Origin: Perkinsus chesapeaki ATCC PRA-425
Taxonomy: Eukaryota > Protista > Perkinsozoa
Assembly: GCA_013115145.1 (NCBI GenBank)
Contig: JAAPAO010000055.1
Location: forward strand, 1-64,000
Length of the DNA stretch: 64,000 bases
Direction of reading: 5' to 3'
The position numbers and the translations under genes are program-made. Below are positions 17,138 to 20,134 of the stretch, piece by piece. The notes below the pieces were generated by a model. The model ran no database searches, had not been told where the DNA came from, and was given only the letters and a program-made list of their open reading frames with translations. Position 1 is the first letter of the stretch. Each line of letters opens with the position of its first letter.

Positions 17138-20134
17138 ATGTCTATGATCGAGCAAGCCAAGCGTATGGGGGTCAACACCGAGGTGTTCGGTGATGCCTCT
17201 CCCTTCGGCGATCCTAACTGGTACCAGTCCTACAACACCCCCTTCTACAACGACTCTCACAAGCGTCTTCGTGCCTTTATGCGCAAGCTGGTTGAAGAGA
17301 AGCTTATGCCACACGTCCACGAGTGGGACGAGAGTTTCGAAATCCCGCGTGAAGTTCACAAGATGCTCGGCCAGACCGGCATCAATGTGCTGGCCATGGG
17401 CCACCCCTATCCGGTGGAGTACCAGAGCCCCCCAGAATGCCTCAAGGGCGTAGAGTTGGACACCTTCCACGAACTGGTTTTATGCGACGAGCTGGCCAGA
17501 GCCGGCAGTGGTGGCCTGGCCTGGGGTGTCGTTGGTGGTCTGACGATCGGTCTCCCCCCTGTCCTGAGATTCGGCTCGAAGGCCATGAGAGACCGTGTTG
17601 TACCCGAATGCCTATCTGGTGAGAAGATGATATGTTTGGCGATCACCGAGCCGACTACTGGATCTGATGTTGCTAATATCAGATGTAGTGCAAAGAAGTC
17701 ACCTTGTGGTAAATATTATATTGTTAATGGTGAAAAGAAATGGATAACGAATGGCATCTGGGCTGATTACTTTACCGTAGCTGTCCGTACTGGTGGCTCT
17801 GGTATGGGTGGTATTAGTCTAATGCTTATTGAGAAGACTATGCCTGGTGTTACTACTAGAAGAATGAAGTGTTCTGGTGTATGGTCATCTGGTACAACAT
17901 TTATATCATTTGATGATGTTAAAGTTCCGGTAGAGAATCTAATTGGTAAAGAAAATAAAGGTTTCAAGTACATCATGCACAACTTCAACCACGAGCGTCT
18001 AGCTCTCTGCACCCTCACTAATAGGTTCGCCCGTGTCTGCTACGAGGAGGCTCTGAAGCACGCTAATAAGCGCAAAACTTTCGGCAAGACCCTGGTGCAG
18101 CATCCGGTGATCAGATTCAAGCTAGGTGAGATGGCACGTCAAATTGAAGCCACTCAGTGTTGGATGGAGCAAGTGGCCTATCAAGTTGGCACCATGCACC
18201 CATTGGAGGCTAACATGAAGCTCGGTGGTGTAACTGCATTATTGAAGGTTCAATGTACAAAAGTATTTGAATATTGTGCAAGAGAGTCTGCTCAAGTATT
18301 TGGTGGATTATCGTATTCTCGTGGTGGTGTTGGTGAGAAGGTTGAAAGGCTTAACCGTGAAGTTAGAGCGATGGCAGTGCCCGGTGGAAGTGAGGAGATT
18401 TTACTCGACCTCGGAGTCAAGCAGATGTCGAAGCTTGCTGAGATGGCCAGCGCTTTAGTCGAGCAGGTAAGATTCTCGAAAGCTCAAGTTTTGCTCTTCG
18501 TGTTCATTCAGTTTTGGTGTGATTATTATTACTTTTCAGGCCGAGCAGGAGAATGCCGGTAATAAGAAGCAGATGGCCATGGCTCGAGCGATGGGCGTCA
18601 ATACCGAGGTTTTCGGTGATGCCAACGCCTTTGGTGATCCGTACTGGTACCAGGCCAATAATAGCCCCTTCTACAACGAGACCCATAGGAAGCTTCGTGC
18701 TTATGTTAGAGAGCTATTTGAGAAGGAGATCATGCCCAACGCCTTTGAGTGGGATGAGAATCTTGAGATTCCCAGAGAGGTAGGAGGAGACCGCGCAGAT
18801 TCTTACAATTCTCCTATTACTTTACTTTTTATACTGCGTCATAGTAGTTCACCTCCGCTGGACAAAAACATATATGGTGCGCACTGTCGAATGTTCTCCT
18901 CCCAAGATCGCCCGTACATCTGCACTTCTTTCGCCTTGTTATGAGGCCATATCTTCCATATGGTACCATTTATCGCCTGTTTCAGGTCCACAAGCGCATG
19001 GGAGCTCTCGGCCTCACATGTCTGGCTATGGGTCACCCTTATCCAGTTGAATACGGCAAGCTCCCTAAAATCCTTGAAGGCGTTAAGATCGACGTTTTCC
19101 ATGAGCTCATTGTATCTGATGAGCTCTGCCGATGTGGCAGCGGCGGAGTGGCCTGGGGTCTCGTTGGTGGTCTGACGATCGGTCTCCCCCCTGTCCTGAG
19201 ATTTGGCTCGAAGGCCATGAGAGATCGTGTTGTACCCGAATGCCTATCTGGTGAGAAGATGATATGTTTGGCGATCACCGAGCCGACTGCTGGATCTGAT
19301 GTTGCTAATATCAGATGTAGTGCAAAGAAGTCACCTTGTGGTAAATATTATATTGTTAATGGTGAAAAGAAATGGATAACGAATGGCATTTGGGCTGATT
19401 ACTTTACCGTAGCTGTCCGTACTGGTGGCTCTGGTATGGGTGGTATTAGTCTAATGCTTATTGAGAAGACTATGCCTGGTGTAACTACTAGAAGAATGAA
19501 GTGTTCTGGTGTATGGTCATCTGGTACAACATTTATATCATTTGATGATGTTAAAGTTCCGGTAGAGAATCTAATTGGTAAAGAAAATAAAGGTTTCAAG
19601 TACATCATGCACAACTTCAACCACGAGCGCTTCTCCCTTTGTGTCCAAACCAACCGTTTCTCTCGTGTATGCTACGAGGAGGCTCTGAAGCATGCTCATC
19701 GCCGCAAGACCTTCGGCAAGCCCCTTATCCAGCATCAGGTTATCCGCTGGAAGCTCGCCGAGATGTCGAGGCTAATCGAGGCAACGCACGCCTGGCTGGA
19801 GAACATCGCTTATCAGCTTTCCACCATGCATCCATTGGAGGCTAACATGAAGCTCGGTGGTGTGACTGCATTATTGAAGGTTCAATGTACAAAGGTATTT
19901 GAATATTGTGCAAGAGAGTCAGCTCAAGTATTCGGTGGGTTATCGTATTCTCGTGGTGGTGTTGGTGAGAAGGTTGAAAGGCTTAACCGTGAAGTTAGAG
20001 CGATGGCAGTGCCCGGTGGAAGTGAGGAGATTATGATAGACCTGGGAGTTCGACAGATGCGCAAATTGGCGGAGATGGCTCGGACCATGGTGGCCGAGGC
20101 GAACGATGGCAACGAGGCCCCCAGCAGGCTTTAG
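17138..20134 (+). CDS. Tandem-fused double acyl-CoA dehydrogenase with C-terminal PTS1 (SRL)
   Basis: Two complete ACAD modules (CLAITEP..GSDVA, NGEKKWITNG, FNHER, VPGGSEEI) joined in frame by phase-0 intron 18467-18539; second intron 18780-18985; ends EAPSRL*. Confidence 0.85.

Follow-up and report, generated by a model that had tools for sequence, protein, structure and literature searches.

A candidate double acyl-CoA dehydrogenase gene in Perkinsus chesapeaki and the patchwork evolution of its two modules

Two full acyl-CoA dehydrogenase (ACAD) modules can be read in tandem at positions 17138-20134 of the window analysed here, which comprises the first 64,000 nucleotides of contig JAAPAO010000055.1 of Perkinsus chesapeaki ATCC PRA-425. 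Perkinsus parasitises oysters and clams. All features of the window described below lie on the forward (+) strand. The upstream module (module 1) lacks a stop codon of its own at the end of its exon and has no tail that could serve as a peroxisomal targeting signal type 1 (PTS1); such a tail is found at the end of the downstream module (module 2). Does this locus hold one gene for a fused protein, or two neighbouring genes? Based on a comparison of splice sites and reading frames across the genus, it is very probably a single gene that is spliced in cis and gives a fused protein of 905 amino acids. If so, a second question arises, namely how two modules on one chain have been kept alike in some segments and different in others.

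One gene or two

The locus is read as a three-exon gene (17138-18466, 18540-18779, and 18986-20134). Exon 1 corresponds to module 1 and is a single open exon of 443 codons, beginning with the ATG at 17138 and ending with the CAG codon at 18464-18466. Intron 1 (18467-18539) is 73 nt long, lies in phase 0, and has the ends GTAAGA and TTTTCAG. The bases that follow its acceptor are GCC GAG CAG GAG AAT GCC GGT AAT AAG AAG CAG ATG, where the first 11 codons encode a linker, AEQENAGNKKQ (18540-18572), located 5' of the ancestral Met of module 2. Splicing of intron 1 is predicted to join ...ASALVEQ to AEQENAGNKKQ-MAMARAMGVN in frame, thereby connecting module 1 to the linker and creating the junction peptide ...LVEQAEQENAGNK.

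The remainder of exon 2 (18573-18779) encodes the start of module 2 (MAMARAMGVN...), made up of an N-terminal extension and the beginning of the N domain; it covers positions 1-35 of the Pfam Acyl-CoA_dh_N profile and aligns to module 1. Intron 2 (18780-18985; 206 nt, GTAGGA...TTTCAG) appears as a gap when the DNA of the two modules is aligned, module 1 being continuous at this site. Gene lengths in P. olseni and P. marinus imply an intron of ~50 nt at the same position. Exon 3 (18986-20134) encodes the other 382 residues of module 2, and the gene ends with AGC AGG CTT TAG (20123-20134), that is, SRL (20123-20131) followed by the stop codon (20132-20134). The fused product would be 905 residues long (443 + 80 + 382). 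The two complete ACADs, the GTAAGA donor at 18467, the TTTTCAG acceptor to 18539, the linker and the SRL terminus are all exactly where the original prediction had placed them.

Seven sequences were compared across the junction: this window, four loci of P. olseni, and two loci of P. marinus. The donor, CAG/GTRRGN directly after codon 443, and the acceptor, YAG/GCN directly before the linker, are kept in all seven. The interval between them is unalignable, contains stops, and measures 73, 141, 141, 219, 219, 226, and 229 nt. Since these lengths do not keep to a three-base periodicity (73, 141, 219, 226, and 229 leave remainders of 1, 0, 0, 1, and 1 on division by three), the interval is non-coding. 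An intron of 73 nt with GT-AG ends is ordinary for this genus, since Perkinsus introns are GT-AG and mostly shorter than 100 bp (PMC3101222). The 33 nt of the linker show no insertion or deletion in any of the seven sequences, and variation is found at 7 of 11 third codon positions vs. 2 of 22 first and second positions (Fisher p = 0.002). Judged by this substitution pattern, the linker is coding sequence in the frame of module 2, without a start codon of its own. An assembly or duplication artefact is ruled out by the presence of the same structure in seven sequences from three species.

The principal alternative is a pair of separate tandem genes, with module 1 translated to the stop at 18560-18562 and module 2 translated from the Met at 18573, the 5' end of its message being supplied by spliced-leader trans-splicing at 18539/18540. 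Any entry of module 1 into peroxisomes would then depend on piggy-backing on module 2. Spliced-leader trans-splicing does occur in Perkinsus (PMC3101222, PMC2868825), and several other points weigh against a single gene. The Met of module 2 is kept at the ancestral start position in three species, and the genome is compact, with ~210 nt between genes on the same strand in P. olseni; therefore, spacing alone does not exclude two messages. No transcript was seen for the locus in two small RNA runs deposited under the same species label, which yielded zero contigs. Nor are the public fused models (see below) independent proof, because they are themselves gene predictions. The placement of the double ACAD in peroxisomes, its FAD content, its substrates, and the acceptor of its electrons are all inferred.

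Against two genes stands the sequence on either side of intron 1. If intron 1 is left unspliced, module 1 reads on through 31 unconserved codons to the TAA at 18560-18562. Across the species such read-through tails comprise 5-31 codons, are unrelated to each other, and in no case form a PTS1, which argues against a separate module 1 product. The P. chesapeaki interval is free of stops in frame 0, which places the first stop 3' of the acceptor; to reach it, a message for module 1 on its own must run beyond the acceptor, and the messages of two genes would have to overlap. Two genes are also at odds with the coding-type evolution of the 33 nt upstream of the Met, with the invariant donor directly after codon 443, and with the fact that relatives carry the fusion in one open reading frame (ORF). 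We therefore consider two separate genes most improbable.

An intermediate possibility is that the fused protein of 905 residues is the main product and is accompanied by minor transcripts, either for module 2 alone with its PTS1 (a spliced leader being added at the same acceptor) or for module 1 alone without a PTS1 (intron 1 being retained). Since a conserved Met lies 33 nt downstream of an internal 3' splice site, a message for module 2 alone is mechanically possible in an organism that practises trans-splicing. However, no observation made here favours single-module isoforms; any duplication and fusion is expected to leave a Met at the former start, and the selection acting on the linker bears on the fused form alone. 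Mixed output of this kind thus seems unlikely. A single cis-spliced gene, the in-frame fusion through a phase-0 intron that was originally proposed, is favoured by the conserved splice sites, the coding-type linker, the absence of a PTS1 from module 1, the double ACADs found elsewhere, and the public models.

The end of module 1 together with the linker (VEQ-AEQENAGN..., 18458-18572) bears a weak resemblance, by eye only, to the tail of module 2, VAEANDGNEAPSRL (20093-20131). The linker may perhaps be derived from the old C-terminal tail of the upstream copy, intron 1 having arisen inside that tail.

The original prediction implied that this gene model was novel, which it is not, since it is already public for P. 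marinus and P. olseni. GenBank holds models of 905 residues for P. marinus (XP_002780315.1) and P. olseni (KAF4680313.1, KAF4662633.1, and KAF4696285.1), in which the junction reads LVEQ-AEQENA(G/S/A)NKKQM and the tail is SRL. The Perkinsus models in GenBank share with the window the locus, the three-exon structure, the LVEQ-AEQEN... junction, and the SRL tail. Module 1 of the window is 93% identical to residues 1-443 of KAF4680313.1 from P. olseni, and the exon 3 product is 92% identical to residues 524-905 of the same model. Both modules are identical to the P. chesapeaki model KAF4674911.1 over the parts compared. This last model has 846 residues, a further in-frame GT...AG stretch of 177 nt (19562-19738) having been removed as an intron. 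Because the stretch, which the models of P. marinus and P. olseni retain, encodes 59 fully conserved residues including the catalytic Glu of module 2, the annotated intron is probably a mis-prediction, and the P. chesapeaki model would need correction to 905 residues.

The fused models are named only as "acyl-CoA dehydrogenase, putative" or "hypothetical protein". In the literature on Perkinsus, peroxisomal, and two-domain ACADs, no paper was found that describes a eukaryotic double ACAD or its patchwork evolution. What appears to be undescribed in the papers found is the fusion architecture, itself a variation on a known kind of fused ACAD, together with the mosaic evolution of its modules.

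Active sites and predicted fold

In module 1 the N-terminal, middle, and C-terminal ACAD domains were recognised by Pfam with E-values of 6e-17, 1e-21, and 3e-37. Matches to PF02771, PF02770, and PF00441 exceed the curated cut-offs, in module 1 within its single exon and in module 2 across exons 2 and 3. The acyl-CoA oxidase (ACOX) domain PF01756 was absent from both modules in this search. Both Perkinsus modules score >810 bits against a single-module profile.

A Glu within the motif NFNHER is present in both modules, at codon 17993-17995 in module 1 and codon 19625-19627 in module 2, in agreement with the claim that both retain the Glu of FNHER. In a phmmer alignment this residue falls on the helix-G Glu of FVAER/FQAER in the structures 3oib and 3r7k, a position that we take to be the catalytic one of LCAD and IVD. 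In the same alignment, PGGSEEI places a Gly at the position of MCAD Glu376. The helix-G alignment backs the LCAD/IVD-type Glu of the original prediction.

The C-terminal SRL matches the PTS1 consensus [SAC]-[KRH]-[LM] (PMC9244630); it is kept in three Perkinsus species and is carried by the last module only. Among single-module relatives of 430-480 residues, an AKL or SKL tail is found in 100 of 109. The same P. chesapeaki genome also encodes three single-module ACAD paralogues, which end in SKM, ARL, and GKL. These belong to the same subfamily (53-58% identity), have at least two exons each, and are located on G000 contigs at C2938:10628-11935, C189:33813-35115, and C47:12549-13854.

Whole-protein work used the public orthologues, and the fold was predicted for that of P. 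marinus, using AlphaFold2 with an alignment of 23 double ACADs. The resulting model, a check that the original prediction had suggested, has a mean predicted local distance difference test (pLDDT) score of 87 and a predicted template modelling (pTM) score of 0.89 over 905 residues, pLDDT falling to 63-78 in the linker region. A pTM of 0.89 for two modules of ~440 residues means that their mutual placement is confidently predicted, and the modules may pack as an intramolecular pseudo-dimer. Foldseek gave a TM score of 0.94 by target. Residues 485-885 (module 2) match the mycobacterial ACADs 3oib and 3r7k with a Z score of 52 and a root-mean-square deviation of 1.3-1.7 Å over 375-379 residues; the Z score against human IVD and LCAD is about 49. 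These are the nearest solved folds and share the position of the helix-G Glu (as aligned with 3oib and 3r7k), but unlike the Perkinsus protein they are single-module, mitochondrial or bacterial homotetramers. Foldseek and VIA-align returned single-module matches only; the intramolecular contact of such a pseudo-dimer may be the FAD-sharing dimer interface or the tetramer interface. Of the covalent heterodimer that was first proposed, the fusion and the presence of two differing modules are supported by sequence analysis, whereas the dimer geometry is deduced from the pTM of the orthologue model.

Mosaic evolution of the two modules

In trees built from split modules, module 1 and module 2 of Perkinsus are sisters, with support of 100/99 when all columns are used and 94/84 with unconverted columns only. 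Each Perkinsus module is monophyletic across species. The duplication is therefore older than the split of the three species, and it probably happened within this lineage.

The two modules have not diverged evenly since then. In two tracts (nucleotides 391-861 and 1057-1266 of the modules), identity reaches 96-98.5% within each genome but only 79-88% between species. In the window, tract 1 spans 17528-17998 in module 1 and 19160-19630 in module 2, and runs from the end of the N domain through the beta domain as far as the catalytic Glu. Its two copies are 98.5% identical within the P. chesapeaki genome, vs. 79-80% identity to the orthologous tract of other species. Tract 2 (18194-18403 in module 1, 19826-20035 in module 2) comprises the late C-domain helices up to PGGSEEI; here, identity is 96% within the P. 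chesapeaki genome vs. 79-82% between species. Within the tracts, module 1 of one species is not more similar to module 1 of another than to its module 2. The number of synonymous substitutions per site (dS) is 0.08-0.18 within a genome, vs. 0.8 to saturation between species. Such low divergence within genomes, combined with high divergence between species, is the mark of ongoing gene conversion. All three species share the same tract boundaries.

Outside the tracts, at residues 1-130 and 288-352, the number of nonsynonymous substitutions per site (dN) is 0.25-0.29 between paralogues and 0.04-0.07 between orthologues, where dS is saturated. These rates indicate that the divergent segments of both modules are under purifying selection, and that the differences between them are being maintained too. 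They correspond to the N-terminal alpha domain and to ~65 residues, forming helices, after the catalytic Glu, and are conserved between species. In ACAD structures, both of these regions line the acyl pocket. The location of these segments fits the earlier proposal that the modules differ on their substrate side. With sharp tract boundaries shared by three species, beside segments that selection holds apart, the locus is a clean example of mosaic concerted evolution.

The base composition of the tracts is unusual in P. chesapeaki only. In this species the tracts are AT-rich at synonymous sites, with a GC content at third codon positions of 0.31-0.38 vs. 0.55-0.78 in the flanks; the tracts of P. 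olseni and P. marinus have values of 0.53-0.68. At sites where P. olseni and P. marinus agree, GC-to-AT changes in P. chesapeaki outnumber the reverse by 46:8 in tract 1 and 17:5 in tract 2, compared with 6:4 to 10:7 in the flanks, and are mostly C to T and G to A. One thought is that an AT-biased process tied to the repeated tracts could underlie this composition.

Double ACADs are also found in an environmental clade and in foraminifera, and in the trees these form groups separate from Perkinsus. Because of this separation, at least three origins of ACAD fusion are probable, one each in Perkinsus, foraminifera, and the environmental clade. A single event shared by Perkinsus and the environmental clade was rejected, since the two Perkinsus modules are each other's sisters with the support given above; the backbone of the tree is unresolved, so that independence is probable rather than certain. 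An 860-residue "double ACAD" of Effrenium voratum (P0125) is a different case. Its two halves are identical, with zero branch length in the tree, and it is more likely to be two copies from a tandem gene array that the gene predictor joined than a genuine fusion.

A possible role and comparison with known systems

The following sequence of events very probably accounts for these observations. As suggested by the trees, a tandem duplication most likely took place within Perkinsus, ahead of the divergence of the three sequenced species. Cis-splicing of two GT-AG introns, of 73 and 206 nt, would now yield a tandem ACAD of 905 residues, its modules connected by ~11 linker residues and by the N-terminal extension of module 2 itself. 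The folded protein would be imported into the peroxisome by Pex5, where it may carry out alpha,beta-dehydrogenation of acyl-CoAs at two non-identical active sites. Conversion has since held the two tracts, in the beta domain as far as the Glu and in the late helices of the C domain, near identical; the N-terminal alpha domain and the ~65 residues after the Glu stay different.

Acyl-CoA oxidases usually carry out the first step of peroxisomal beta-oxidation, and an ACAD is usually assembled as a homotetramer of a single kind of chain. Perkinsus has peroxins, of which a full set has been reported in P. olseni (PMC5755239). A table in the same paper lists ACOX as absent from the P. olseni transcriptome, and a PTS1-bearing acyl-CoA oxidase has been listed for P. 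marinus (PMC3178647). In the P. chesapeaki genome a separate ACOX gene is located at C2802:32601-35113, with matches to ACOX domains above the Pfam cut-offs. The idea that the double ACAD replaces a missing acyl-CoA oxidase was rejected on account of this gene and of the P. marinus oxidase (PMC3178647). Given a separate ACOX gene, the double ACAD would add to the oxidase and not replace it.

We tentatively suggest, as a reading with somewhat less than an even chance of being right, that the product is an obligate covalent hetero-pseudodimer whose two sites differ in acyl-chain preference. Conversion would preserve the FAD-binding and interface core, and selection would block it in the two pocket-lining segments, the boundaries having been held for the history of the genus; there would be at least three independent eukaryotic fusions of this kind, each with one PTS1. 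If this were true, it would hint that such fusions are favoured by the import of folded oligomers into peroxisomes. A natural single-chain dimer would allow one to ask what a second, different site contributes, how one PTS1 serves two modules, and which electron acceptor is used.

The closest known proteins are single-module PTS1 ACADs of ~450 residues from dinoflagellates, Amoebophrya, and chytrids. They belong to the same subfamily (61-71% identity) and share the N-terminal extension, NFNHER, and PGGSEEI, but differ from the Perkinsus protein in having one module per chain, each with its own AKL or SKL tail. Several of the chytrid proteins (P0104, P0114-P0116, and P0119) carry a cytochrome b5 domain (PF00173). 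A transcript-derived protein of 1180 residues (P0139) combines FAD-oxidoreductase/fumarate-reductase-type domains and cytochrome b5 with an ACAD of the same subfamily. These b5-linked relatives are a hint that a haem b5 partner, not electron transfer flavoprotein (ETF), receives the electrons of the subfamily. No ETF is known from the peroxisome.

The environmental double ACADs (P0122-P0134, 800-890 residues) resemble the Perkinsus protein in having two modules and one PTS1-like tail, and one of them (L019) is encoded by a single uninterrupted ORF in a compact eukaryotic genome. They differ in that module 2 is degenerate, scoring 90-360 bits vs. 600-690 bits for module 1, which recalls the bacterial enzyme CasC (see below), and no concerted evolution was seen in this clade. 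The contigs concerned (those of L019, P0124, and P0131) are gene-dense, with genes called as uninterrupted ORFs, and on two environmental contigs the ACAD lies beside genes for ArfGap, FYVE, PARP, and ETF-ubiquinone oxidoreductase in the same order. In the foraminifera Elphidium, Bolivina, and Nonionella, double ACADs of 824-830 residues are present in transcriptomes, each as one transcript. All of the double ACADs found elsewhere end in PTS1-like tripeptides. This points to a eukaryotic PTS1-tagged ACAD subfamily in which two modules seem to have been put on one chain repeatedly, with both catalytic sites retained in Perkinsus.

Among bacterial enzymes, the alpha2beta2 ACADs ChsE4-ChsE5 and ChsE1-ChsE2 of Mycobacterium tuberculosis are likewise dimers of two different ACAD units (PMC8399759). 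Their subunits are encoded by separate genes, and each heterodimer has one active site and one FAD (PMC8399759), whereas the Perkinsus modules would be covalently joined and neither site is visibly lost. CasC, a steroid side-chain ACAD of Rhodococcus jostii RHA1, comes closer in architecture. It is made up of two ACAD domains fused together, and only the C-terminal one has the Glu, the N-terminal domain serving to bind FAD (PMC8399759). The spliced Perkinsus model likewise places two ACAD domains on one polypeptide, but it comes from a eukaryote, has a PTS1 and an intron at the join, and keeps the Glu in both modules and not in one alone. Read in this light, the predicted Perkinsus protein works like a fused ACAD and is not a CasC-type member.

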